The notes below the pieces were generated by a model. The model had not been told where the DNA came from and made no database searches. It was given only the letters and a program-made list of their open reading frames with translations. This document shows positions 1 to 56,560 of a DNA stretch of 64,000 bases, in pieces. The stretch lies in the NCBI RefSeq assembly GCF_035084215.1, contig NC_090340.1:5704001-5768000 (forward strand), in the 5' to 3' direction. The stretch is from Heptranchias perlo (lineage: Eukaryota). Each line of letters opens with the position of its first letter. The stretch's first letter is position 1. The position numbers and the translations under genes were made by a program.

Positions 1-514
1 ACTTTAATGACTTACGACTGAGCTTCTGACTGCCAGGGTTGGCCACTCCCAAGTTGACACTCTTATTAATACGTCCGAGAGACCATAGTTATCATCGTTA
101 ATACTATATTAAGAGATAAAAATAATCAGTCATTGTAAGTAAGCAAGTTATATACATCTGTATACTTACAAGCAGACAACCTGTTGTATGAACCTAATAA
201 AAGCTTGACTTCCTGTGTCTGCAGTAAAAGACATAAGTAGCGGTATACCGCTATTATACCGCTACTTAAATAAAACTTAATTACATTAAATAAAAAAATA
301 TTCTAAACCATTATAAACTAATGTTAATCATGTGGATTACTTAAAATCGTGCTTTGTTAGTTCTGAATTAAGTTTGCATTGTGATTAACTATGAGCTATC
401 ACAGCTCGCTGGGCTCCTGCTTTCCATGTTACAAACGTTGCCTGGCAGCACTCTTCAGCAGAAATAAGTTATGTGCCAGTGTCCAGCTGTATGGATTGCT
501 TTAGGCAAACTGCG

Positions 515-1300
515 TTCGGAAGAATGAGGGCAGGCAATGTAAACTAAAGGCCACAATTCTAAAACGGGTACAGGGACAGAGAGATCTGGGGGTATATGCA
601 TACATTCGTTGAAGGTGGTGGGGCAGGTTGAGAAAGCGATTTAAAAAAGCATACCGGATCCTGGGCTTTATAAATAGAGGCATAGAGTACAAAAGCAAAG
701 AAGTCAAGACGGACTTTTATAAATCACTGGTTCGGCCACAACTGGAACATTGTGTCCAGTTCTGGGCACAGCACTTTAGGAAATATGTGAAGGCCTTAGA
801 GAGGGTGGAGAAGTGATTTACTGGAATGATTCTAGGGATGAGAGACTTTAGTTACGTGAACAGACTGGAGAAGCTGTGGCTGTTCTCCTTGGAACAGAGA
901 AGGTTGAGCACAGATTGGACAAAGGTATTCAAAATCATGAAGAGTCTAAGCAGAGTAGATGGAGAGAAACTGTTCCCATTGGCGGATGGTTAAATAACCA
1001 GAGGATAGAGATTAAAAGTGATTGGCAAAAGAACCAAAGGTAAGAATGAAGAAAAACGTTTTCATACAGCGAGGGATTAGGATCTGGAACGCACTGCCAG
1101 AGGGGGTGGTGGAAATAGATTCAATCATGGCTTTCGAAAGGGAACTGGATAAGTACTCGTAAAGAAATAATTTGCAGGGCTACGGGGATAAGGCGGGGGG
1201 AGTGGGACTCGCTGGATCGCTCTTCCATTGAGCCAGCACGGACTCGATGGGCCGAATGGCCTCCTTCCGTGATATAACCTTTCTATGATCCAATGATTAG
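515..1300 (+). mobile_element. CR1 LINE 3' fragment (RT C-terminus + 3' UTR with (TTCTATGA)-like tail)
   Basis: ORF 628-816 (GFINRGIEYKSKEV...LVRPQLEHCVQFW) is the typical CR1 ORF2 C-terminus; ends in gggccgaatggcctccttccgtg...ctatgat. Confidence 0.9.
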
Positions 1301-3800
1301 AACCATAGAAGCATAGAACCATAGAAAAGATACACCACAGAAGGGGCTATTCGGGCCATCGTGTGCATGCCAGCTGGAAGAACAACCAGGTGCCCATTCG
1401 AATCCTAACTTCCAGCACACGGTCCTTAGCCCTGCAGCTGACAGCACTTCAGCTGCAGGTCCAAGCACTTTATAAAAGAGTTGAGGGCCCTTGCCTCTAC
1501 AACCAATTCGGGCAGCGAATTCCATACACACATCACCCTGTGGGTAAAAAAGATTTTCCTCATGTCCCCTCTAATCCTTCCGCCAATCAGCTTATATCTA
1601 TGTCCTCTAGTTCTCAATGTCTCCGCTAGGCGAAACAGGTATTTCCTGTCTACCCTATCTAGACCACTCATAATTTTGTATAACTCAATTAAGTCTCCAC
1701 TCAGCCTCCTGTGCTTCAAGGGAAGCAACCCCAGCCTATCCAATCCCTCCTCATAGCTGCAATTTTCAAGCCCTGGCAACATTCTTGTAAATCTTCTCTG
1801 CGCACTCTCCAGAGCAATTACGTCCTTCCTGCAATGTGGTGACCAAACTGCGCACAATACTCCAGCTGTGGCCGTACCAGCGTTTTATGCAGTTCCATCA
1901 TTACATCCCTGCTTTTGTAATTCTATACCTCAGCTAATAACGGAGAGCAGACCGTATGCCTTCTCCACAACCTTATCTACCTGTACTGCCACCTTCAGGG
2001 ACCTGTGCACATGCACTTCATGGTGTTTCACTTCCTGTACCCCTCTCAATATATTCCCGTTTACTGCGTATTCCTATTTATTGTTTGCCCTCCCTAATTG
2101 CATTACCTCACACTTCTCCGGGTTGAACTCCATTTGCCAGTTTTCTGCCCACGCCACCAACACATTGATGTATTTTTGGAGTCTACAGCTATCCTCTTCA
2201 CTATCAACTGCACAGCCAATTTTTGTGTCATCTGCAAATTTGCCAAACATGTCCCCTACATTCAAGTACAAATCATTAAGATATACCACAAACAGCAAGG
2301 GACCCAACACTGAGCCCTGCGGCACACCACTGGAAACGGATTTCCATTCGCAAAGACATCCATCGACATTTACCCTTTGTTTCCTGTTACTGAGCGAAAT
2401 TTGCGTCCAATTCGCCACATTTCCGTGTATCCCATGGGCTTTTACCTTTCTTACTAGTCTGCCATGTGGGACTTTGTCAAATGACTTACTAAAATCCATG
2501 TAGACAACATCCACTACACTACCCTCATCAATTCTCCTTGTCACTTCCTCAAAGAATTCAATCAGATTTGTAAGGCTTGACCTTCACTGCACAAATCCAT
2601 GCTGACCATTCCTGATTAAAGCACGCCCTTCCAAGTGCCAGTTTATCCTTTCTCTCAGTATTGATTCGAATCGATTTCCCACCACTGAGGTAGGACTGAC
2701 AAGCCTATAATTGTTCGGCCTTTCACTCGTACCGTTTTGAAACAATGGTACTACGTTTGCAGTCTCCCAGTCCTCTGGTACCTCCGCTGTATCTCGTGAG
2801 GATTGGAAAATGATACTCAGAGCATCCGTTATTTCCTCCCTGGCTCCCTTCAATAGCCCAGGAAACAATCCATTCGGCGCTGCTGACTTATCAACTTTCA
2901 AGAATCCAGGTCCCTCTATTACTTTCTCTTTCGATTTGTTTACCTTATCCAACATTATACACCTCTCCTCTTTAACTACTACGTCCGGATCATCCATTTC
3001 CCTTGTGAATACGGAGACAAAATATTCATTTCTTACCCAACCCATACCCTTTGCTTCTACACACAAATTACCCTTATCATCCCCGATAGGTCGCACTTTT
3101 TCCTTAGCTATCTTCTTGTTCTTAATGTACTGGTAAAACACCTTTGGGCTTTCTTTAACCTTACCAGTTAATATTTTTTACATGGCTTCTCTTTGCTTTC
3201 TTTATTACCTTTTTTACGTCATCCCTATACTTTCTCTGCGCCTCTAGGCTTTCTGCGGTATTTATTTTTCTGTGACAGTCATAAGCTTTCTTTTTCTGCT
3301 TTATCTTGCCCCGTATACTTCTAGACAACCAGCGGACTATAAATTTGGCTATACCACCCTTTTTCTTTGAGCGGACGTGTCTGCGTTGTACCCCTAGAAT
3401 TTGTCTTTTTAGTGCCTCCCACTGGCTTGCCACTGATTTCTCCTCAAATAGTTGTGTCCAGTCCACTTCTGCCAAATCACCTCTTAGTTCTGTAAAAATT
3501 TGCCTTGCCCCAATTTAAAACGTTTACTCCTGATTTAACTCTGTCCTTTTCCATTATAATGCTAAAACTAACTGAAATGTGATCACTATCCCCAATATGG
3601 TCACCCACTGTCACTTCACCCACTTGCCCATCATTATTTCCCAGGACTAAATCTAGCATTGCATCCCCCCTTGTTGGGCTTGTCACGTACTGGCTAAAAC
3701 AAGTTCTCCTGGACACCAATCAAGAATTCTACGCCCTCTGTGCCCCTCACACTGTTGGAATCCCAGTTGATGTTAGGGTAGTTGAAGTCGCCTACTTCTA
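1300..3800 (-). mobile_element. CR1 LINE, 5'-truncated, frameshifted ORF2 (APE end, RT, 3' UTR); tail-to-tail with the previous copy
   Basis: ORF pieces PTRGDAMLDLVLGN, DFSKSFDKVPH, GVPQGSVLGPLLF, KFADDTK, QRRFTRMLPGL; (catagaac)n tail at ~1300-1325. Confidence 0.92.
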
Positions 3801-10843: not shown

Positions 10844-11299
10844 AGGAAAACAGCATTTTCGAAGGAAAGGGATGGGGAGTGGGGGGCAATAGTCAGAGGC
10901 TGGAAACATGTTCCTGGTGATGTTGCCAGTTTTACCAGCAGGATCGGTTGAACACATTGGAATTTTTCCTCCTGAATTACTAATCGCCCTGAAAATACTC
11001 ACAACTCCCGATTAAAAACTGACTTGAGGGGAGAACTGCTGTTTGGTTTTGTTATTTTTCCCCAAATCTTTGAGAAACAAGGTTAGCAGTTGCTTTTAGC
11101 CATTTATGCCATTTTTCAAGATATTCAGTAGATGTCGCGTTGGGGTGCCCTGATAAACTTCAGTGGGCGAGTGGACTCAACTGCCTCAACTGCCTTATTG
11201 TGGGCCCAAAATGATTGTGTTTTCCCTTAATACGCCATTCGGAATCTCCAGGCCCGTGGTCAGTAAATCTTGTTGCTCATTGGTTGACCGTGCACTGTA

Positions 11300-23040: not shown

Positions 23041-25690
23041 GTCATAGAGTCATAGAGTTATACAGCACGGATAGAGGCCCTTCGGCCCATCGTGTCGGCG
23101 CCGGCCATCAGCCCTGTCTACTCAAATCCCATATTCCAGCATTTGGTCCGTAGCCTTGTGTGCTATGGCATTTCAAGTGCTCATCCAAATGCTTCTTGAA
23201 TGTTGTGAGGGTTCCTGCCTCAACAACCCTTTCAGACAGTGAGTTCCAGACTCCAACCACCCTCTGGGTGAAAAAGTTCTTTCTAAAATCCCCTCTAAAC
23301 CTCCCTCCTTTTACCTTGAATCTATGTCCCCTTGTTATAGAACCCTCAACGAAGGGAAAAAGCTCATAAGTATCCATCCTATCTGTGCCCCTCATAATTT
23401 TGTACACCTCAATCATGTCCCCCCTCAGCCTCCTCTGCTCCAAGGAAAACAAACCCAATCTTCCCAGTCTCTCTTCATAGCTGAAGCGCTCCAGCCCTGG
23501 TAACATCCTGGTGAATCTCCTCTGCACCTTCTCCAAAGCGATCACATCCTTCCTGTAGTGTGGCGACCAGAACTGCACACAGTACTCCAGCTGTGGCCTA
23601 ACCAGTGTTTTATACAGCTCCATCATAACCTCCTTGCTCTTATATTCTATGCCTCGGCTAATAAAGGCAAGTATCCCATGTGCCTTCTTTACCACCTTAT
23701 CTACCTGTTCCGCCACCTTCAGGGATCTGTGAACTTGCACACCAAGATCCCTCTGACCCTCTGTCTTGCCTAGGGTCCTCCCATTCATTGTGTATTCCCT
23801 TGTCTTGTTAGTCCCTCCAAAGTGCATCACCTCGCACTTTTCCGGGTTAAATTCCATTTGCCACTGTTCCGCCCATCTGACCAACCCATCTATATCGTCC
23901 TGCAGACTGAGGCTATCCTCCTCGCTATTTACCACCCTACCAATCTTTGTATCATCAGCGAACTTACTGATCATACCTTTTACATTCATATCCAAGTCAT
24001 TAATGTAGACCACAAACAGCAAGGGACCCAGCACCGATCCCTGTGGTACCCCACTTGCCACAGGCTTCCAGTCACAAAAACAACCTTCGACCATCACCCT
24101 CTGCCTTCTGCCACTAAGCCAGTTTTGTATCCAAAGTGCCAAGGCACCCTGGATTCCATGGGCTCGTACCTTCTTGACCAGTCTCCTGTGGTGGACTTTA
24201 TCGAAGGCCTTACTGAAATCCATGTATACCACATCCACTGCGTTACCCTCATCCACACGCCTAGTCACCCCCTCAAAAAATTCAATCAAATTAGTCAGAC
24301 ATGATCTTCCCTTGACAAAGCCATGTTGACTATCCCTGATTAATCCTTGCTTCTCCAAGTGGAGACTAATTTTGTCCTTCAGAATTTTTTCCAATAATTT
24401 TCCTACCACTGATGTTGGGCTCACTGACCTGTAGTTCCCCGGTTTTTCCCTACTCCCCTTCTTTAATAATGGTATTACATTAGCGGTTCTCCAGTCCTCT
24501 GGCACATCCGCTGTGGCCAGAGAGGTTCTGAATATATGTGTCAGAGCCCCCGCAATCTCCTCCTTTGCCTCACACAGTAGCCTGGGATACATTTCGTCCG
24601 GGCCTGGGGATTTATCCATTTTTAGGCCTGCTAAAACCGCCAATACCTCCTCCCGCTCGATGTTAATATGTTCGAGTATATCACAGTCACCCTGCCGTAT
24701 TTCTATGTCTACATCGTCCTTCTCCATAGTGAAAACAGATGCAAAAAATTCATTTAGAACCCCTCCTGCATCTGCCGGCTCCACACACAGATTGCCATTT
24801 TTGTCCCTAATGGGCCCTATTTTTTCCCTAGTCATCCTCTTACCCTTAATATACTTATAAAACATCTTAGGATTTTCCTTTATTTTACTCGCCAGTGTTA
24901 TTTCATGGCCCCTCCTTGATCTCCTAATTTCTTTTTTAATATGCCCCTGCACTTTTTGTACTCCTCTAGGGCTTCCTCCGTCTTTAGCCTTTTGTATCTG
25001 CCAAAAGCCCTCCTTTTTTTCCTAATCCATTCTCGTGTATCCCCTGACATCCAAGGTTCCCTGGAGTTCTTGGAACCACCCTTGTCCTTTACGGGAACAT
25101 GTTGCCATTGTATGGTCTCAATCTCCCTTCTGAAAGACTCCCATTGCTCCGATGTGGATTTTCCTACAAGCAGCTGATCCCAGTCCATTTTGGCCAGATC
25201 CTGCCTTATCCTATTAAAATCGGCCTTCCCCCAATTTAGAACCTTTATTTCCGGCCCCTCCCTGTCCTTTTCCATGACCACCTTAAATCTCACCGAATTA
25301 TGGTCAATGTCACCACAGTGCTCACCTACTAGCACTTCTTCCACTTGGCCGGCCACATTCCCTAGAATTAGGTCCAGTACCGCCCCCTCTCTTGTTGGAC
25401 TTTCTACATGCTGGCTCAAAAAGCTCTCCTGGATGCACGTTAAGAATTTTGTACCCTCTAAGCCTTTTACACTCTGAGTATCCCAGTTAATATTGGGGAA
25501 GTTGAAATCCCCCACTATTATTACCCTATTATTTGCACAATTTTCTGAGATTTGCCTACATATCTGTTCCTCTATCTCCCCCTGACTGTTTGGGGGCCTA
25601 TAGTACACTCCCATCAAAGTGCTTGCCCCCTTTTTGTTTTTAAGCTCCACCCATATGGCCTCATTATAGGAACCTGCTAATATATCATTA
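23041..25690 (-). mobile_element. Young CR1 LINE, 5'-truncated: APE (24898-25690) + 614-aa open RT region (23108-24952), one frameshift
   Basis: YYRPPN, VGDFNFP, LDLILGN, DFSKAFDKV, GVPQGSVLGP, KFADDTK, WSPHYRKD; (CTCTATGA)n tail. Confidence 0.96.
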
Positions 25691-25832
25691 GTCCATCCAC
25701 AGTATTCCACACGTGACACCACGAAACAGTCATAATCAATTATCTGAAAGTATTTCTGGGCACAACTATTTCGTGCTTATTCTGAACAAGTGTTCGAGAT
25801 CATTTCTGTTTATCTGTCTGCCAATCCGGATT

Positions 25833-40133: not shown

Positions 40134-40177
40134 GTGCTGAAACCTATGCAAAAGAACACAGCCACTGTACTAATAGG
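40134..40177 (+). CDS. Receptor gene A exon 5: short cytoplasmic exon (GAETYAKEHSHCTNR)
   Basis: tttccag| acceptor, AGG|gtaagt donor, phase 1 to 0, fits the flanking exons. Confidence 0.75.
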
Positions 40178-40191
40178 GTAAGTCCTACACA

Positions 40192-40490
40192 TTGATCTAT
40201 CTATCAANNNNNNNNNNNNNNNNNNNNNNNNNNNNNNNNNNNNNNNNNNNNNNNNNNNNNNNNNNNNNNNNNNNNNNNNNNNNNNNNNNNNNNNNNNNNN
40301 NNNNNNNNNNNNNNNNNNNNNNNNNNNNNNNNNNNNNNNNNNNNNNNNNNNNNNNNNNNNNNNNNNNNNNNNNNNNNNNNNNNNNCTATAGATCTACTTA
40401 TCCACCTATCTATCTGTAAATGTATATATCCATCTAGCTATCGTCCATCTATCTATTTATCTATCGATAAATCTATCAAACTATCTTTTT
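40192..40490. repeat. (TCTA)n microsatellite containing an assembly gap (N run 40208-40385); resumes at 43884-43925
   Basis: ctat/tcta repeats flank the Ns; similar repeats plus (TA)n follow the LINE cluster. Confidence 0.85.
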
Positions 40491-43400
40491 CTATTCATTC
40501 ATAGAATGTAAGCGTCGCTGGGAACGCCAGCATTTATTGTCCATCATTAATTGCCATTTTGAAGGTGGTGGTGAGCCGCCTTCTTGAACCGCTGCAGTCC
40601 GTGTGGTCAAGGTTCTCCCACACTGCTATTAGGTAGGGAGTTTCAGGATTTTAACCCAGCAATGATGAACGAACGGCTATATATTTCCAAGTCAGGATGG
40701 TGTGTGACTTGGAGGGGAACCTGCATGGGGTGTTCCCATGTACCTGCTGCCCTTGGCCTTCTAGGTGGTAGAGGTCCCGGGTTTGGGAGGCGCTGTCGAA
40801 GAAGTCTTGGCGAGTTGCTGCAGTGTATATTGCACATGCTGACACTGCAGCCACGTTGCGCTGGTGGTGGAGGGAGTGAATGTTTAAGGTGGTGGATGGG
40901 ATACCAATCAGGCGGGCTACTTTGTCCTGGATGGTGTCGATCTTCTTGAGTATTGTTGGAGCTGCACTCATCCACACACGTGGAGAGTATTCTAACACAA
41001 TCCTGACTTGTGCCTGGTAGATGGTGGAAAGGCTCTGGGGAGTCAGGAGGTGAGTCACTCGCCGCTAACTACCCAGCCTCTGACCTGCTCTTGTAGTCAC
41101 AGTAATTATGTGGCTGGTCCAGTTAATTTTCTGGTCAATGTTGACTCCCCACCCCCCCACCCCACGCACACACACACATACGATGTTGATGGTGGGAGAT
41201 ACGGCGATTCTAATGCCGTTGAATTTAAAGGGGAGGTGGTTAGACGCTCTCCTATTGGAGATGGTCATTGCCTGCCATTTGTTTGGCACGATTGTTACCT
41301 GCCACTTATCAGCCCAAGTCTGAATGTTGTCCGGGCCTTGTTGAATGCCGACACGGACTGCTTCATTATCTGAGGGGTTGCGAATGGAACTGAACACTGT
41401 GCAATCGTTAGCAAACAACCCCATTTCTGACCTTATGATGGAGGGAAGGTCATTGATAAAGCAGCTGAAGATGATTCGGCCTAGGACACTGCCTTGTGGT
41501 ACTCCTGCAGCAATGTCCTGGTGCTGAGATGATTGGCGTGCAACACCCACTACCATCTTCCTTTTTGCCAGGTCTGGCTCTAGCCACAGGAGAGTTTTCT
41601 CCCTGATTCCCATTGACTTGTAGTGCCACACAGCACGATGGATTGTGCCCTCTGTGTGATGACGGGTCTCCGTCTCCCATGAGGTATATGCAGTGGTCAC
41701 TCCTACCAAAACTCTCATGGGCAGATGCATCTGCGACAGTTAGATTGGTGAGGACGAGGTCAAGTAGGCTTCAACCTCGTGTTGGTTCTCTCACCACCTG
41801 TCGTAGTCCCCGCCTGGCAGTTATGTCCTGCAGGACTCGGCCAGGTCGGTCAGTAGTGGTGCATCCGAGCCACTATTGGTGATGAACATTGAAGAATCCC
41901 ACCAGAGTGCATTCTGTGCCCTTGCTACCCTCAGTGCTTCCTCCAAGTGGTGTTCAACTTCAAGGAGGACTGATTCATCAGCTGAGGGAGGGAGGGAAGT
42001 GGTAATCAATAGGAAATTTCCTTGCCCATGTTTGACCTGATGCCATTCGACTTCCTGGGGTCTGGAGTCAATGTTGAGAACTCCCAGGGCCACTCCCTCC
42101 TGACTGTGTACCATTGTGCCGCCACCTCTGGTGGTTCCGTACTCCCAGTGGGACAGTACATACCCAGGGATGGTGATGGCGCTGACTGGGTTGTTAGCTG
42201 AAAGATATGATTCTGTGAGTATGTCTATGTCAGGCTATTGCTTGACTAATCTATGGGACAGCTCTCCCAATTTTGGCATAAATCCCAGATGTTAGCGAGG
42301 AGGTCTTTACAGGGTCGAATGCACTTGTTTTGCCTTTGTCGTGTCCGGTGCTCAGTGGTCCGATTCCGGATGGTCCTCCCGGTTTTATTATTATCATGTC
42401 TTTTTGTAGCAGAATTTTACAACTTATTTTTATTCGTTCATGGGATGTGGGCACCGCTGGCGAGGCCTGCATTTATTGCGCATCCCTAATTGCCCTTGAG
42501 AATGTGGTGGTGAGCTGCCTTCTTGAACAGCCACCGTCCGTGTGGTGAGGGATTCCCCACAGTGCTGTTAGGAAGTGAGTTCCAGGATTTTGACCCAGCG
42601 ACGATGAAGGAACGGCGATATATTTCCAAGTCGGGATGGTGTGAGACTTGGAGGGGAAAGTGTAGGTGGTGATGTTCCCATGTACCTGCTGCTCTTGTCT
42701 TTCTAGGTGGTAGAGGTCGCGGATTTGGGAGGTGCTGTCGAAGAAGCCTTGGCGAGTTGCTGCATTGCATCCTGTGAATGGTACACACTGCAGCGACAGT
42801 GCGCCGGTGGTGAAGGGAGTCAATATTTCGGGTGGTGGATGAGGTGTCAATCAAGCGTGCTGCTTTGTCCGGAATGGTGTCGAGATTCTTGAGTGTTGTT
42901 GGAGCTGCACTCATCAAGGCAAGTGAAGAGTATTCCTCTCCTGACTTGTGCCTTGTAGATGGTGCAAAGCCTTTAGGAGTCAGGAGGTGAGTCACTCACC
43001 GCAGAATACCCAACCTCTGACCTGTTCTTGTAGCCAAAGTATTTGTATGGCTGGTCTAGTTAAGTTTCTGGTCAATCTTGACCCCCAGGATGTTGATGGT
43101 GGTGGATTCGGCGATAGTAATGCCGTTGAATGTCAAGTGGAGGTGGTTAGACTCTCTCTTGTTGGAGATGGTAATTGCCTGGCAATTGTCTGGCGTGAAT
43201 GTTACTTGCCACTTATCAGCCCAAGCCTGGATGTAGCCCAGGTCTTGCTGCATGCGGGCTCGGACTGCTTCATTATTTGAGGGGTTGCGAATGGAACTGA
43301 ACATTGTGCAATCATCAGTGAACATCCCCATTTCTGACCTTATGATGGAGGGAAGGTCATTGATGAAGGAGCTGAAGATGGTTGGGCCTAGGACACTGCC

Positions 43401-43883
43401 CTGAGGAACTCGTGCAGCAATGTCCTGGTGCTGAGCGGATTGGCCTCCAACAACTTCTACCATCTTACTATATGCCAGGTATGACTCCAGCCACTGGAGA
43501 GTTTTCCCCCTGATTCCCATTGACTTCAATCTTACACGGGCTCCTTGGTGCCACACTCGGCCAAATGCTGCTTTGATGTGAAGGGCAGTCACTCTCACCT
43601 CACCTCTGGAATTCAGCTCCTTTGTCCATGTTTGGACCAAGGCTGTAATGAGGTCTGGAGCCGAGTGGCCCTGGCGGATCCCAAACTGAGCATCGGTGAG
43701 CACGTTATTGCTGAGTAAGTGACGCTTGATAGCACTGTCGACGACACCTTCCATCACTTTGCTGATAATTGAGATTAGACTGATGGGACGGTAATTGGCT
43801 GGATTGGATTCGTCCTGCTTTTTGTGGAATTAGTGGCTTGCTAGGTCTTTTCAGAGGGCATTTAAGAATCAACCATATTGCTG
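40490..43883 (-). mobile_element. Older copy of the tRNA-headed LINE (40490-42424 + 43830-43883), with a ~1.1 kb internal deletion at ~41619 and interrupted by a second copy
   Basis: Collinear with 51905-54955 except the jump cattgactt|gtagtgccaca; leader remnant tagtggcttgctagg...aatcaacc at 43830-43883. Confidence 0.88.
42425..43829 (-). mobile_element. 5'-truncated copy of the tRNA-headed LINE nested in the previous copy
   Basis: Own 3' tail (tattcgttcatgggatgtgggc) at 42431; RT ORF 43056-43757; truncated at gtcctgctttttgtgga. Confidence 0.9.
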
Positions 43884-44649
43884 TCTATCTATCGATCCAT
43901 CTATATATATATATATATATATATAATTTAGAAATTGTAAGAAATCATGAGCCAGAAAGATGATTGTCCAGATGTTGATCTTTAAAGTATAGGATTGCAA
44001 CATGATAGCACAGGCATTGTTATCGCATTCGATTTATTTTTCTTCTTTTAAGAGTTTGCCTGTTTATGTATTATGTACCACCCATTGTAAATTAACTAGG
44101 AAGTAGTTTATACAAGAGTAGCTTGGGTGAAGATATACATTTGGAATGTGGAGTGTGAAGGACTCCACATTTTCCACATTGGAGAAAGAGTTCGAAATCC
44201 CCACCAAAGATATTATGAATTTTATGAGGCTTTTGAACGTGGAGCAAGAACGAAAATTCAGAGCTTTGATTTGGGAGTTGCAGAATATAGGTGCGCAATG
44301 CTTGGTTTGTACCAAGATGGTACAATGAAGGGATGGGGCAATTTATTGTTAACTAAATCTGGAAGCTCTGAGAATATTAGCACAGACGAAGGGTTCAGGG
44401 AGATTCCCGAGGTAAGGAAGAGGGGAGTGATGGGCCGATTTTCCAGCCAGTAGAAGAATCGTAAATTCGATGCAATGAGGATTGAGGAACCAATGGAGGA
44501 AAGCAACGACATGGTAATAAGTGGCTGCATTTTTTATTTGATAGGATGAGAGCAGCAGACGTCTCGATAAATAGTGGCTTACGTGGAGTCGAGGTCAAGT
44601 CACAGAGAGGATCATTGGGAAAGTGGAGCCTGGAAGTCATAAAGGCATA

Positions 44650-51400: not shown

Positions 51401-51968
51401 GCCCTTTTTTCTATTTGGTTATATTTTTTAAGTATTATTGATAAAAAAAAACATTAATGCATGACTTTGCAATGGAGACTGAACTAAGTCTGCACGTCCT
51501 AATTGCTCTCTGCTCCTCACTCTCCTGGAGATAAAATAATGCATTGTAAAAATAACTTTCTAAATTTGTGTTTTTAGCACCTTTTCTGATTGTGGGATCA
51601 CGCACATTGGAGGAAGAGCGCATCCTATGGCTGGCGGTAGAAATCGGAAGCAGGACAAAACGGAGGCACCTATCCGGCTGAATGGTATTACCAGAGGTGA
51701 ATTTGCATTTTCTGCTGAAATTTACCCCCAAGGCAGAAATCTCAATATATAAAGCTGCAGAGTTGAGACTAGACGATTGAAGTTTAGGGCAACTGGGATC
51801 CTTTCGCTGCTAAGAAAAAACGGGAAAATCGCGGCAAAGAGGCCAAGGAAAATGGGGTAGATAATAAACATGCATTCTTGATACTGAACTTCGGAGGAAG
51901 TATTTTTTTTTATTATTCGTTCACGGGATGTGGGCGTCGCTGGCAAGGCCAGCATTTATTGCCCATCC

Positions 51969-54884
51969 CTAATTGCCCTCGAGAAGGTGGTGGTGAGCCG
52001 CCTTCTTGAACCGCTGCAGTCCGTGTGGTGACGGTTCTCCCACAGTGCTGTTAGGAAGGGAGTTCCAGGATTTTGACCCAGCGACAATGAAGGAACGGCG
52101 ATATATTTCCAAGTCGGGATGGTGTGTGACTTGGAGGGGAACGTGCAGGTGGTGTTGTTCCCATGCGCCTGCTGCCCTTGTCCTTCTAGGTGGTAGAGGT
52201 CGCGGGTTTGGGAGGTGCTGTCGAAGAAGCCTTGGCGAGTTGCTGCAGTGCATCCTATGGATGGTACACACTGCAGCCACATTGCGCCGGTGGTGAAGGG
52301 AGTGAATGTTTAGGGTGGTGGATGGGGTGCCAATCAAGCTGGCTGCTTTATCTTGGATGGTGTCGAGCTTCTTGAGTGTTGTTGGAGCTGCACTCATCCA
52401 GGCAAGTGGAGAGTATTCCATCACACTCCTGACTTGTGCCTTGTAGATGGTGGAAAGGCTTTGGGGAGTCAGGAGGTGAATCACTCGCCGCAGAATACCC
52501 AGCCTCTGACCTGCTCTCGTAGCCACAGTATTTATATGGCTGGTCCAGTTAGGTTTCTGGTCAATGGTGACCCCCAGGATGTTGATGGTGGGGGATTCGG
52601 CGATGGTAATGCCGTTGAATGTCAAGGGGAGGTGGTTAGACTCTCTCTTGTTGGAGATGGTCATTGCCTGGCACTTATCTGGCACGAATGTTACTTGCCA
52701 CTTAGGAACCCAAGCCTGGATGTTGTCCAGGTCTTGCTGCATGCAGGCTCGGAATGCTTCATTATCTGAGGGGTTGCGAATGGAACTGAACACTGTGCAG
52801 TCATCAGCGAACATCCCCATTTCTGACCTTATGATGGAGGGAAGGTCATTGATGAAGCAGCTGAAGATGGTTGGGCCTAGGACACTGCCCTGAGGAACTC
52901 CTGCAGCAATGCCCTGGGGCTGAGATGATTGGCCTCCAACAACCACGACCATCTTCCTTTGTGCTAGGTATGACTCCAGCCACTGGAGAGTTTTCCCCCT
53001 GATTCCCATTGACTTCAATTTTACTAGGGCTCCTTGGTGCCACACTCGGTCAAATGCGGCCTTGCTGTCAAGGGCAGTCACTCTCACCTCACCTCTGGAA
53101 TTCAGCTCTTTTGTCCATGTTTGGACCAAGGCTGTAATGAGGACTGGAGCCGAGTGGTCCTGGCGGAACCCAAACTGAGCATCGGTGAGCAGGTTATTGG
53201 TGAGTAAGTGCCGCTTGATAGCACTGTCGACGACACCTTCCATCACTTTGCTGATGATTGAGAGTAGACTGATGGGGCGGTAATTGGCCGGATTGGATTT
53301 GTCCTGCTTTTTGTGGACAGGACATACCTGGGCAATTTTCCACATTGTCGGGTGGATGCCAGTGTTGTAGCTGTGCTGGAACAGCTTGGCTAGAGGCGCA
53401 GCTAGTTCTGGAGCACAAGTCTTCAGCACTACAGCTGGGATGTTGTCGGTGCCCATTGCCTTTGCTGTATCCAGTGCACTCAGCCGTTTCTTGATATCAC
53501 GTGGAGTGAATCGAATTGGCCGAAGACTGGCTTCCGTGATGGTGGGGATATCGGGAGGAGGCTGAGATGGATTATCCACTCGGCACTTCTGGCTGAAGAT
53601 GGTTGCAAACGCTTCAGCCTTGTCTTTTGCACTCACGTGCTGGACTCCGCCATCATTGAGAATGGGGCTGTTTGCAGAGCCTCCTCCTCCCGTTAGTTGT
53701 TTAATTGTCAACCACCATTCACGACTGGATGTGGCAGGACTGCAGAGCTTTGATCTGATCCGTTGGTTGTGGAATCGCTTAGCTCTGTCTATAGCATGTT
53801 GCTTCCGCTGTTTAGCATGCATGTAGTCCTGAGTTGTAGCTTCACCAGGTTGGCACCTCATTTTTCGGTACGCCTGGTGCTGCTCCTGGCATGCTCTTCC
53901 ACACTCCTCATTGAACCAGGGTTGATCCCCTGGCTTGTTGGTAAAGGTAGAGTGAGGAATATGCCGGGCCATGAGGTTACAGATTGTGCTGGAATACAAT
54001 TCTGCTGCTGCTGATGGCCCACAGCGCCTCATGGATGCCCAGTTTTGAGCTGCTAGATCTGTTCAGAATCTATCCCATTTAGCATGGTGGTAGTGCCACA
54101 CAACACGTTGAATGGTGTCCTCAGTGCGAAGACGGGATTTCATCTCCACGAGGACTGTGCGGTAGTCACTCCTACCAATACTGTCATGGACAGATGCATT
54201 TGCGACAGGTAGATTGGTGAGGACGAGGTCAAGTAAGTTTTTCCCTCGTGTTGGTTCGCTCACCACCTGCCGCAGGCCCAGTCTAGCAGCTGTGTCCTTC
54301 AGGACTCGGCCAGCTCGGTCATTAGTGGTGCTACCGAGCCACTCTTGGTGATGGACTTTGAAGTCCCCCACCCAGAGTACATTTTGTGCCCTTGCTGCCC
54401 TCAATGCTTCCTCCAAGTGGTGTTCAACATGGAGGAGGACTGATTCATCAGCTGAGGGAGGACGGTAGGTGGTAATCAGCAGGAGGTTTCCTTACCCATG
54501 TTTGACCTGATGCCATGAGATTTCATGGGGTCCAGAGTCAATGTTGAGGACTCCCAGGGCCACTCCCTCCTGACTGTATATCACTGTACCGCCACCTCTG
54601 GTGGGACTGTCCTGCCGGTGGGACAGGACATACCCAGGGATGGTGATGGAAGAGTCTGGGACGTTGGCTGAAAGATATGATTCTGTGAGTATGGCTATGT
54701 CAGGCTGTTGCTTGACTCGTCTGTGGGACAGCTCTCCCAATTTTGGCACAAGTCCCCAGATACTAGTAAGGAGGACCTTGCAGGGTCGACTGGGCTTGTT
54801 GTTTTGCCGTTGTCGTGTCCGGTGCCTAGTGGTCCGATGCCGGGTGGTCCGTCCGGTTTTATTCTTATTATGACTTTTCGTAGC
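51969..54884 (-). pseudogene. APE-RT ORF of the tRNA-headed LINE: 971 codons in one frame, two premature stops (54492-54494, 54063-54065), no AUG start
   Basis: Track ORFs 54492-54749, 54063-54416 and 51969-54032 share a frame; motifs SIWGL, PDIAILTES, VGDFKVH, LLDLVLTN, NYRPISLL, KAAFDRVWH, GVPQGSVLGP, FADD. Confidence 0.9.
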
Positions 54885-55060
54885 GAGATTTTACAACTGA
54901 GTGGCTTGCTAGGCCATTTCAGAGGGCAATTAAGAATCAACCACATTGCTGTGGGTCTGGAGTCACATTTAGGCCAGACCGGGTAAGGACGGCAGGCTTC
55001 CTTCCCTGAAGGACATTAGTGAACCAGATGGGTTTTTACGACAATCCGGTAGTTTCGTGG
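54882..55060 (-). promoter_or_regulatory. Structured leader; candidate IGR-IRES-like element ending in an anticodon-mimic hairpin (54897-54922)
   Basis: Hairpins at 55023-55050, 54955-54979, 54941-54954 (GCAA tetraloop) and CUGA-AA-UGGC[CUAGCAA]GCCA-C-UCAG; loop AGC is complementary to the in-frame GCU at 54884-54882. Confidence 0.5.
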
Positions 55061-55149
55061 CTATCATTACTGATACTCGTGCTTGAATTCCAGATTTTTA
55101 TCTTAATTAATTGAATTTAATTAATTAATTGAATTTAAATTCGCCAGCT

Positions 55150-55240
55150 GCCGTGGCGGGATTTGAACTCATGACTCTGGATTTTAGTCCAGGCCTCTGG
55201 ATTATTAGCCCAGTAACATAACCACTATGCTACCGTTCCC
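55150..55240 (-). promoter_or_regulatory. tRNA-derived internal Pol III promoter (A box 55232-55222, B box 55170-55159)
   Basis: Sense strand: GGGAACGG-TAGCATAGTGG-TTATGTTA-CTGGGCTAATAATCCAG-AGGC-CTGGACTAAAATCCAG-AGTCAT-GAGTTCAAATCC-CGCCACGGCA. Confidence 0.85.
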
Positions 55241-55391
55241 GTATAAGACGGCGGTTTCGCCAACTCTGATGTGGAACGTCGAGTAATCAGTTCAACTGGA
55301 GAAACTGAAGGTTAACAATGGATTTTTTTTCCAGAAGAAAAGTGGGAATCAGTATATCACAAGTACCTTTGAGAGTGTTTAATCTTATAAT

Positions 55392-56560
55392 TACATAGAA
55401 TTTACAGCACAAAAACAGGCCATTCGGCTGGTGCTTATGCTCGACATGAGCTTCCTCCCACCCTGCTTCATCTAACCCTATATGCATATTGTTCTGTTTT
55501 TTTCTCTCTCATGTACATATCTAGTTTCCCCTTAAAAGCATCTACGCTCTTGTCCTCAACTATTCAACGTGGTAGTAAGTTCCACACTCTGAACCACTCT
55601 CTGTGTAAAGAATTTTTTCCTGAATTCTTTGTTGGATTTATTAATGACTATCTTATATTTATGACCCCAATTTTGGACTGGCCAACAAGTGGAAACATCT
55701 TCTCTACGACTAAACTATCAAACCCCTTCATAAATTTGAGGACCTTTGTTAGGTCACCTCTCAGCCTTATGCTTTCTAGAGAAATGAGTTCCAACCTGTT
55801 CATTCTTACCTGATTGTTACACCTCAGAGTTCTAGTATCATCCTTGTAAATCTTTTTTCCACCTTCTTCAGTGCCTCCATATCTTTTTTGTAATATGGAG
55901 ACCAGAACTGTCCACAATACTCTAAATGTGGTCTTACAGGAATTTAACATAACTTCCGTGCTATTCAATTCGATTCCTCTATTTTTGCATTTGTATGCCT
56001 TTGTTAATTGCGTTGCTACAGTTGATGATTTGTGAATGTGTACCACTTGATCCCTTTGCTCCTCTATCACGTTTAGAATCTAAATTTCGAAAGAATATGT
56101 GGCCTCCTTATTTCTCCTACCAAAATGCACCATCTCACATTTATCAATGTTGAAATTCATTGGCCATTCACACGCCCATTCTGCAACTTTATTTATGTCT
56201 TCGCGATTTTGGCACAGTCCTCCTCAATATTAGTCATATTAACCCCCCTCTCCAATTTGGTTTCATCTGCAAATTTTGTAATTTTACCTCCGATTCCCGA
56301 TTCTGTTTATGTAAATGGTGAACAGCAGTCGTCCCAACACCGATCCATGTGGAACACCACTTCCCACCTTTTGCCAGTCTGAGTAACAACCTTTAACCTC
56401 TACTCTCCGTTTTCTGTTTACTAGCCAGCTTGCTATCCATTCTGCGACTTGTCCCCTGACTCCACATGCTCTGACATTAGTCACGAGTCAACTATGCGGC
56501 ATCTCATCAAAAGCGGTTTGAAAATCCATGTAAATTACATCTACTACATTACCCTTCATA
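55392..56560 (-). mobile_element. Decayed CR1 3' fragment
   Basis: GSGVPHGSVLGRLLFTIYIN, LRGDLTKVLKFMKG; 3' UTR ttacatagaatttacagcaca. Confidence 0.85.

Follow-up and report, generated by a model that had tools for sequence, protein, structure and literature searches.

Which RNA polymerase makes the RNA of a long interspersed nuclear element (LINE) that begins like a short one? In the usual view, LINEs are elements of RNA polymerase II (Pol II), short interspersed nuclear elements (SINEs) count as elements of RNA polymerase III (Pol III), with only a tail common to the two. The question is raised by a LINE found in the stretch of the Heptranchias perlo genome analysed here (64 kb of contig NC_090340.1, referred to below as the window; all coordinates are window positions). 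The element lies on the minus strand and runs over 3336 nucleotides (nt) from position 55240 to position 51905. It is composed, in this order, of a tRNA-derived head, a leader body, an open reading frame (ORF) encoding an apurinic/apyrimidinic endonuclease (APE) and a reverse transcriptase (RT), and a tail. This LINE possesses the whole 5′ module of its SINE, together with a coding strand poor in T runs. Judging from the sequence, transcription of the whole element by Pol III would be the best single explanation of these features, with a probability of about 0.45.

A sense strand free of T4 runs

A preliminary description of this locus had claimed that the plus strand contains no AAAA over the element, that is, that runs of four or more T (T4) are missing from its sense strand. 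Counting bore this out. Between positions 51905 and 55240, the plus strand contains 0 AAAA and exactly seven AAA, each in a run of exactly three (about seven had been announced), and TTTT is, as stated, frequent on that strand (20 runs of T4 or longer, or 28 overlapping TTTT). Because the sense strand of the element has 20 runs of four or more A (A4+) versus no T4+ run, the bias concerns T only and one strand only. The AAAA-free interval of the plus strand measures 3489 nt, with one AAAA bordering it at 51849 and another at 55338. It is the longest in the 64-kb window, where 354 A4+ runs were counted on the plus strand (about 5.5 per kb). The second and third longest intervals, of 2545 and 1558 nt, are found at 40150-44253 and coincide with further copies of this LINE family. 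An ordinary CR1 had been put forward as an internal control, and this element (23108-25722, minus strand) indeed holds 13 sense T4+ runs in 2615 nt. A type 2 Pol III unit has no T4 before its end and a T run downstream; in the present element, 0 T4 is found in 3336 nt and the first one comes at +53 from the 3′ end.

T-run avoidance at synonymous and codon-junction sites

The ORF comprises 973 codons in a single frame, in agreement with the approximately 970 first reported, and its T content is 19.6%. As compared to codon-shuffled versions of itself, it is clearly depleted in runs of three or more T (T3+), with six observed versus 14.1-14.2 expected (z -3.16, P 0.0005-0.0015). At codon junctions, T is followed by T (T|T) in 10 cases versus 27.0 expected. 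The corresponding observed-to-expected ratio is 0.37, as compared to 0.78 for A|A, 1.16 for C|C and 1.19 for G|G. None of the 33 TTN codons is preceded by T, although T represents 20.6% of the third positions (binomial P 0.0005). In codons ending with a pyrimidine (NNY), the choice between T and C is 10:50 before a codon starting with T versus 190:275 elsewhere (odds ratio 0.29, P 0.00013). Overall, a genuine avoidance of T runs, specific to T and to the sense strand and operating at synonymous sites and at codon junctions, underlies the zero T4 count. The best explanation is that the family keeps its sense strand clear of T runs through the choice and the order of its codons. In the ORF, poly(A)-signal hexamers show no depletion (2 versus 1.6 expected) and therefore give no sign of a tuning related to Pol II, as far as a test of low power can tell.

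Comparison with other LINE ORFs

The same measures were applied to distant relatives of the ORF. Eighty loci (26-41% identity) came from one metagenome scan. The 78 with an ORF of at least 400 amino acids (aa) were kept and two were dropped; a first-pass set had left out 24 of the 80 loci, having an ORF shorter than 700 aa. Together with two same-window CR1 ORFs and the ORF at 51972-54890, 81 LINE ORFs were compared. In the 78 relatives, the observed-to-expected ratio for T3 has a minimum of 0.72 and a median of 1.00, as compared to 0.42 for the ORF studied here. Their T|T junction ratio has a minimum of 0.55 and a median of 0.94, as compared to 0.37. For T4, the median of the relatives is 1.03. 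These medians are near 1, and the shuffle null can therefore be regarded as calibrated. The ORF of the window element is the most extreme of the 81 on every T measure, including T content. A comparison of this kind had been proposed with relatives lacking a tRNA head, and the expectation that zero T4 is uncommon held among these distant metagenome loci (1/78).

Other elements of the window were examined in the same manner. Twelve other CR1-like segments (14,893 nt) contain 64 sense T4+ and 224 T3+ runs, with 38.6 and 158 expected for independent and identically distributed bases. Six segments of the tRNA-headed LINE family, which are mutually non-independent (8,306 nt), contain 3 T4+ and 27 T3+ runs, with 11.2 and 55.2 expected. 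In the long same-window CR1 ORF, 10 T4 were counted versus 7.6 expected, and the T|T ratio is 0.92. ARAGORN found no tRNA in 56 relatives; this says little, since the same tool misses the head of the window element itself. A scan of viral contigs returned 35 pattern matches, none of them a relative.

Organization of the element

The sequence at 51905-55240 would best be explained as a nearly intact full-length copy from a CR1-group (CR1/L2/Jockey) LINE family of cartilaginous fish. The coordinates of its parts, and of the other copies of the family in the window, are collected in Table 1.

Table 1. Parts of the tRNA-headed LINE and positions of related copies (window coordinates)
Feature	Position	Strand	Remarks
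Sense-strand interval without T4	51850..55340	-	bounded downstream by the first T4 (window 51852-49)
tRNA-derived head, 5′ end of the element	55140..55240	-	A box TAGCATAGTGG, 55232-55222; B box GTTCAAATCC, 55168-55159
Rest of the 350-nt leader: AT-rich linker with internal repeat, then body common to the partner SINE	54891..55139	-	three-frame translation, self-matches, contig depth
Single open frame, 973 codons, no frameshift	51972..54890	-	translation; Pfam PF14529 and PF00078
Stop codon, 67-nt 3′ tail, short A run	51905..51971	-	AATAAA starting at 51960 and 51914; tail common to the SINE
5′-truncated copy, 93% identity	10189..10850	+	CTTTTC at ORF end
5′-truncated copy, 95% identity	44649..45612	+	CTTTTC at the same site
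5′-truncated copy, 91% identity	42424..43828	-	no T4 in 1405 nt; nested inside the older copy
Older copy, 84-85% identity	40486..43884	-	pieces 43884-43832, 42424-41620 and 41619-40486; one T4, in the 41620-42424 piece

The A and B boxes of the head were located by their consensus motifs. An Rfam tRNA match at 55232-55177 is weak: it scores 19.4 bits (E 0.28), where the gathering score is 29. No tRNA is called at the head by ARAGORN. In its minimum free energy (MFE) fold (z -1.63), the head shows neither a cloverleaf nor any evident acceptor pairing. Taken together, the weak score, the missing call and the lack of a cloverleaf give the appearance of a degenerate SINE head. The element has the tRNA-related 5′ head with A and B boxes of a tRNA-derived SINE. 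It is neither short nor non-coding, with its 3336 nt and its 973-codon APE-RT frame.

The head might serve another purpose than promotion. It could be a processing signal, at whose 5′ side a tRNA-processing enzyme would release the element from host co-transcripts, which would give the element a precise 5′ end. Precise 5′ ends are produced by 5′ ribozymes in R2 or RTE elements. Consistent with such processing, the element begins precisely with the head, and features of a Pol II promoter were not recognised. However, the folding and search results just described offer neither cloverleaf nor evident acceptor pairing to a processing enzyme, and processing gives no reason for the avoidance of T runs. 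We regard it as very improbable, and as the least probable of the alternatives considered here.

The leader terminates in TAA, 2 bases ahead of the opening of the ORF frame. No ORF1 was found, just 350 nt preceding the ORF, with stops throughout all three frames. The leader contains 0 T4 and 1 T3, the mononucleotide shuffle giving 1.1 T4 expected with P(0)=0.30. The leader body may resemble the Deu domain of SacSINE1-type elements. In the AT-rich linker, at 55103-55138, the short internal repeat also matches itself on the opposite strand and is palindromic.

As in APE-type LINEs, the ORF encodes an endonuclease domain followed by the RT. The APE part is at approximately 54749-54063 (PF14529, E 2.2e-08) and the RT domain at approximately 53309-52563 (PF00078, E 2.6e-36); an ORF1 and a 5′ untranslated region (UTR) of the element's own are lacking. 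The frame contains two in-frame stops (54494-54492 and 54065-54063). Both are private to this copy, because nearly all the contig depth, in the four runs introduced below, reads another letter there. The first in-frame ATG occurs only at about codon 265. An ATG-started ORF of 83 codons (54695-54946, minus strand) opens within the leader and, in a different frame, overlaps the first part of the main frame, which a -1 shift would enter. This upstream ORF was rejected as feeding the main frame, since in the older copy (43884-43832) its ATG is no longer in frame. Protein homologues of the main ORF number 4495 at E<=1e-20, the best being 42-43% identical. Separately, a Heptranchias perlo protein carrying the annotation aldo-keto reductase family 1 member B1-like is 78% identical to the LINE RT over 38% of the query; its gene model has probably swallowed a LINE fragment.

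At the 3′ side, the sequence at 51905-51985 recurs at the ends of five other LINE copies. The 3′ ends of the family (51905-51920 and the copies ending at 10850, 45612, 42424 and 40486) are A-rich tails of the GAATAAAAA type, overlapped by AATAAA. CR1 elements, unlike the present family, have microsatellite-like 3′ ends.

A partner SINE made of leader and tail

Contigs of four runs (X1, X5, X6 and X10) were matched to the window at 88% likeness or more; the label of these runs as RNA is a guess. Along the ORF, contig depth drops from 3′ to 5′, the pattern expected of 5′-truncated LINE copies. It rises again over the leader (54875-55255) relative to 54748-54874 in X1, X6 and X10, three of the four runs. 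Thus, depth over 54875-55001 versus 54748-54874 is 76K versus 16K in X1, 61.6K versus 1.3K in X6 and 40.8K versus 1.0K in X10; in run X5, no rise was observed (794 versus 994). In the same three runs, contig joints lead from 51978-52020 straight to 54892 (15 joints listed and 365 further counted). Leader depth and joints therefore show that an abundant SINE exists that consists of leader and tail, in other words of the element minus its ORF. It has the 3′ tail in common with a LINE that characterizes SINE2 elements, the tail being present in the five other LINE copies and joined to the leader in three runs. The abundance of this SINE implies that both modules work. One contig (X1, 54844-55016) spans the leader-ORF junction in another copy. 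Finally, no sense T4 would arise from any of the 40 contig variants listed, one of which takes away a T3.

Several known systems resemble this pair in part. Chimeric retrocopies of the U6/L1 type also have the sequence of a small Pol III RNA upstream of LINE sequence. They result from template switching onto 5′-truncated L1 and are dead-end single insertions, whereas here the same junction occurs in copies 15% apart. In the SINE-LINE pairs of cartilaginous fish (SacSINE1-type DeuSINEs with a CR1-like partner; HE1 with HER1), a tRNA head with A and B boxes and a LINE-derived 3′ tail in both the short and the long element are found as here. In these pairs as described, only the tail is in common, whereas here the coding element itself bears the SINE head and body at its 5′ end (PMC3747384, PMC5499810). 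As a general rule for stringent LINE-SINE pairs, the tail serves as the RT recognition site (PMC3747384, PMC5499810). Bipartite, internally deleted non-autonomous LINEs, and SINE bodies that stem from the 5′ region of a LINE, are a further parallel, the partner SINE consisting here of the 5′ part and the 3′ part of the LINE, the coding region being gone. In Kojima 2018, SINE bodies of this origin are reported from RTE and Vingi only, and Pol II is assumed for LINEs. Unlike in those cases, the LINE is here of the CR1 group and the full-length element retains the tRNA head (PMC5786205). T+ SINEs (B2, Dip, Ves), the Pol III transcripts of which are polyadenylated via AATAAA (PMC8466645), also have AATAAA at the 3′ end beside an A-rich tail. 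In the present element, no built-in T-run terminator comes after AATAAA, and the type of LINE partner is another. A literature search that left out most subscription journals and Repbase Reports brought up no paper describing a LINE with a tRNA head or a LINE read by Pol III.

Other copies of the family

The older copy starts at leader position 289, shows the same leader-ORF junction and skips element positions 1211 to 2286. Because the junction is the same in a copy diverged by approximately 15%, the fusion of leader and ORF is old and inherited, and not remade each time. This bears on the idea of recurrent chimeras, in which the LINE proper would have a leader with no tRNA part. The tRNA-headed copies would then arise by switching of the RT from LINE RNA to SINE RNA within the shared leader, and would not correspond to a transcription unit. 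In favour of the idea, the leader body is common to SINE and LINE, and in the sole other copy of the window that reaches the leader, the start at position 289 leaves the head out of sight. The identical junction in so diverged a copy speaks against the idea, however, and the deficit in T runs is left unexplained by it, so that we grant recurrent chimeras only a slim chance.

Some observations concern the insertion sites. The older copy is split at its leader/ORF border by the younger copy 42424-43828, and a stretch of N lies just past its 3′ end. Target-site specificity for a SINE or tRNA was rejected, the 3′ flanks of the five copies being unrelated. Another high-copy repeat starts from about 55389 (55383-55500), where depth jumps in all four runs, with loose ends at 55389-55428. 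It overlaps a decayed CR1-like fragment (55483-56556).

Possible transcription of the element by Pol III

If Pol III reads the element, the head and leader would form a working Pol III module, as the SINE using the same parts is abundant. An enzyme starting at the head of a full-length copy would have to traverse 3.3 kb in order to include the tail, which would be the recognition site for the RT of the family. The transcript would end at the first canonical stop in the flank, the T4 at +53. Termination of Pol III in human cells amounts to about 75% at T4 and about 95% at T5, T1 to T3 being read through (PMC5725217), and degenerate T-rich signals cause partial stops (PMC3141230). With 2.6 T4 expected and about 75% termination at each, only a few percent of the transcripts would therefore reach the tail, and a T4-free master copy would therefore gain a large advantage. 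Translation is the weak point of transcription by Pol III. Rare RNAs, made by Pol II or by read-through, may be the source of the ORF protein, which might act in trans, via the tail, on the RNA made by Pol III.

The preliminary description had proposed selection against premature Pol III termination across the ORF. Selection for Pol III read-through is a reasonable reading of the T-run scarcity, and it is partly supported. On its side are the strongest T-run avoidance of the 81 ORFs, the A and B boxes, and the leader and tail shared with the SINE. The following observations weigh against it and against transcription by Pol III as a whole.

First, zero T4 in the ORF is by itself marginal. The codon shuffle suggested at the outset gave 2.63 expected T4 with P(0)=0.044 when synonymous codons were shuffled (2.66 and P(0)=0.033 with 2000 repeats). 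Shuffling of the codon order gave 2.42 and P(0)=0.0625. The range for codon shuffles is thus 0.033-0.0625, and the suggested test singled out the T3+ deficit more clearly than the absence of T4. A mononucleotide shuffle gave 3.40 and P(0)=0.0255. With a first-order Markov model, 1.81 T4 are expected and P(0)=0.166; with a second-order model, these values become 0.39 and 0.676. The ORF thus has zero T4 because TT and TTT are scarce. The Markov models were rejected as tests of T4 avoidance, since they condition on this very scarcity. Degenerate terminators, taken as six-base windows with at least five T, are not significantly depleted in the ORF (0 versus 2.6 expected, P 0.11).

Secondly, avoidance already operates at T3, and in human cells T3 does not terminate Pol III (PMC5725217).

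Thirdly, related elements show comparable traits. In the NNY test, 13 of the 78 relatives reach P<0.01, with a lowest odds ratio of 0.33, and a same-window CR1 gives 0.45 (P 0.009). A mild avoidance of T|T is thus a common trait of LINE ORFs, the present family being the end of a continuum. Moreover, the single T4-free relative, L049 (metagenome contig, 1-3018, 912 aa), has zero sense T4 over 3018 nt with 5.7 expected in its ORF, and 35 A4+. No small-RNA head is visible in it and an Rfam search gave nothing credible, in a contig where only 53 nt precede the ORF and the 5′ end may be missing. L049 may be a second, independent T4-free LINE.

Fourthly, CTTTTC, of which the preliminary description had itself warned, occurs in two of the five 3′ ends of the family in the window (those at 10850 and 45612), at the same site within the last codons of the ORF and 85 nt short of the end. 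The other three ends have CTTCTC or a different sequence. Therefore, either T4 is tolerated in at least one lineage or these copies derive from another RNA. Finally, the contigs show no RNA starts, ends or strand. Pol III units of 3 kb are not known in nature, nor is the translation of an RNA of that kind, and the literature search returned no report of either.

Part of these observations would fit a simpler situation, in which the family is merely T-poor with the codon-context bias ordinary in LINEs, its transcription relies on Pol II or on host read-through, and the leader is the relic of a one-off chimera with no role in the reading of the body. The P values for zero T4 in the codon shuffles (0.03-0.06) and with the Markov models (0.17-0.68), the T|T avoidance in relatives and in the same-window CR1, the avoidance at T3, the CTTTTC copies and the T4-free L049 with no visible head all agree with it. 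Nevertheless, ordinary bias has to account for an ORF placed first among 81 on T content, T3 ratio, T|T ratio and NNY odds ratio, in the last three cases beyond the most extreme relative. It also has to account for a bias restricted to T and to the sense strand. In addition, neither a Pol II-type 5′ UTR nor an ORF1 was found, and the undepleted poly(A)-signal hexamers, though in a low-power test, do not speak for Pol II. We consider this explanation a serious competitor, which nonetheless falls short of being probable.

Overall, reading of the whole element by Pol III would account best for the combination of head, leader, tail and T-run avoidance. A more complete proposal can be put forward only tentatively. 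According to it, the element would be a retrotransposon that is autonomous and codes for protein, with a 3.4-kb genomic RNA produced by Pol III from a SINE-type tRNA head and a coding sequence recoded free of Pol III stops; it would be either the parent of the partner SINE or an ORF-capturing offspring of it.

Implications for the relation between SINEs and LINEs

The family puts the promoter module and body of a SINE ahead of a working-type APE-RT ORF, with T-specific recoding. Should Pol III not be the reader, the element would still be a clear case of a CR1-group LINE and a SINE sharing both ends, where Kojima 2018 had only RTE and Vingi (PMC5786205). If Pol III does read the element, a Pol III unit can be several kilobases long and protein-coding. 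Among natural Pol III units, this would be the longest by a wide margin, and the family would be a living link between SINEs and LINEs. It would offer a concrete route for the birth of a SINE, by loss of the ORF, or for the rebirth of a LINE, by capture of an ORF by a SINE. The synonymous sites of a transposon would then have been shaped by the stop signal of a polymerase.

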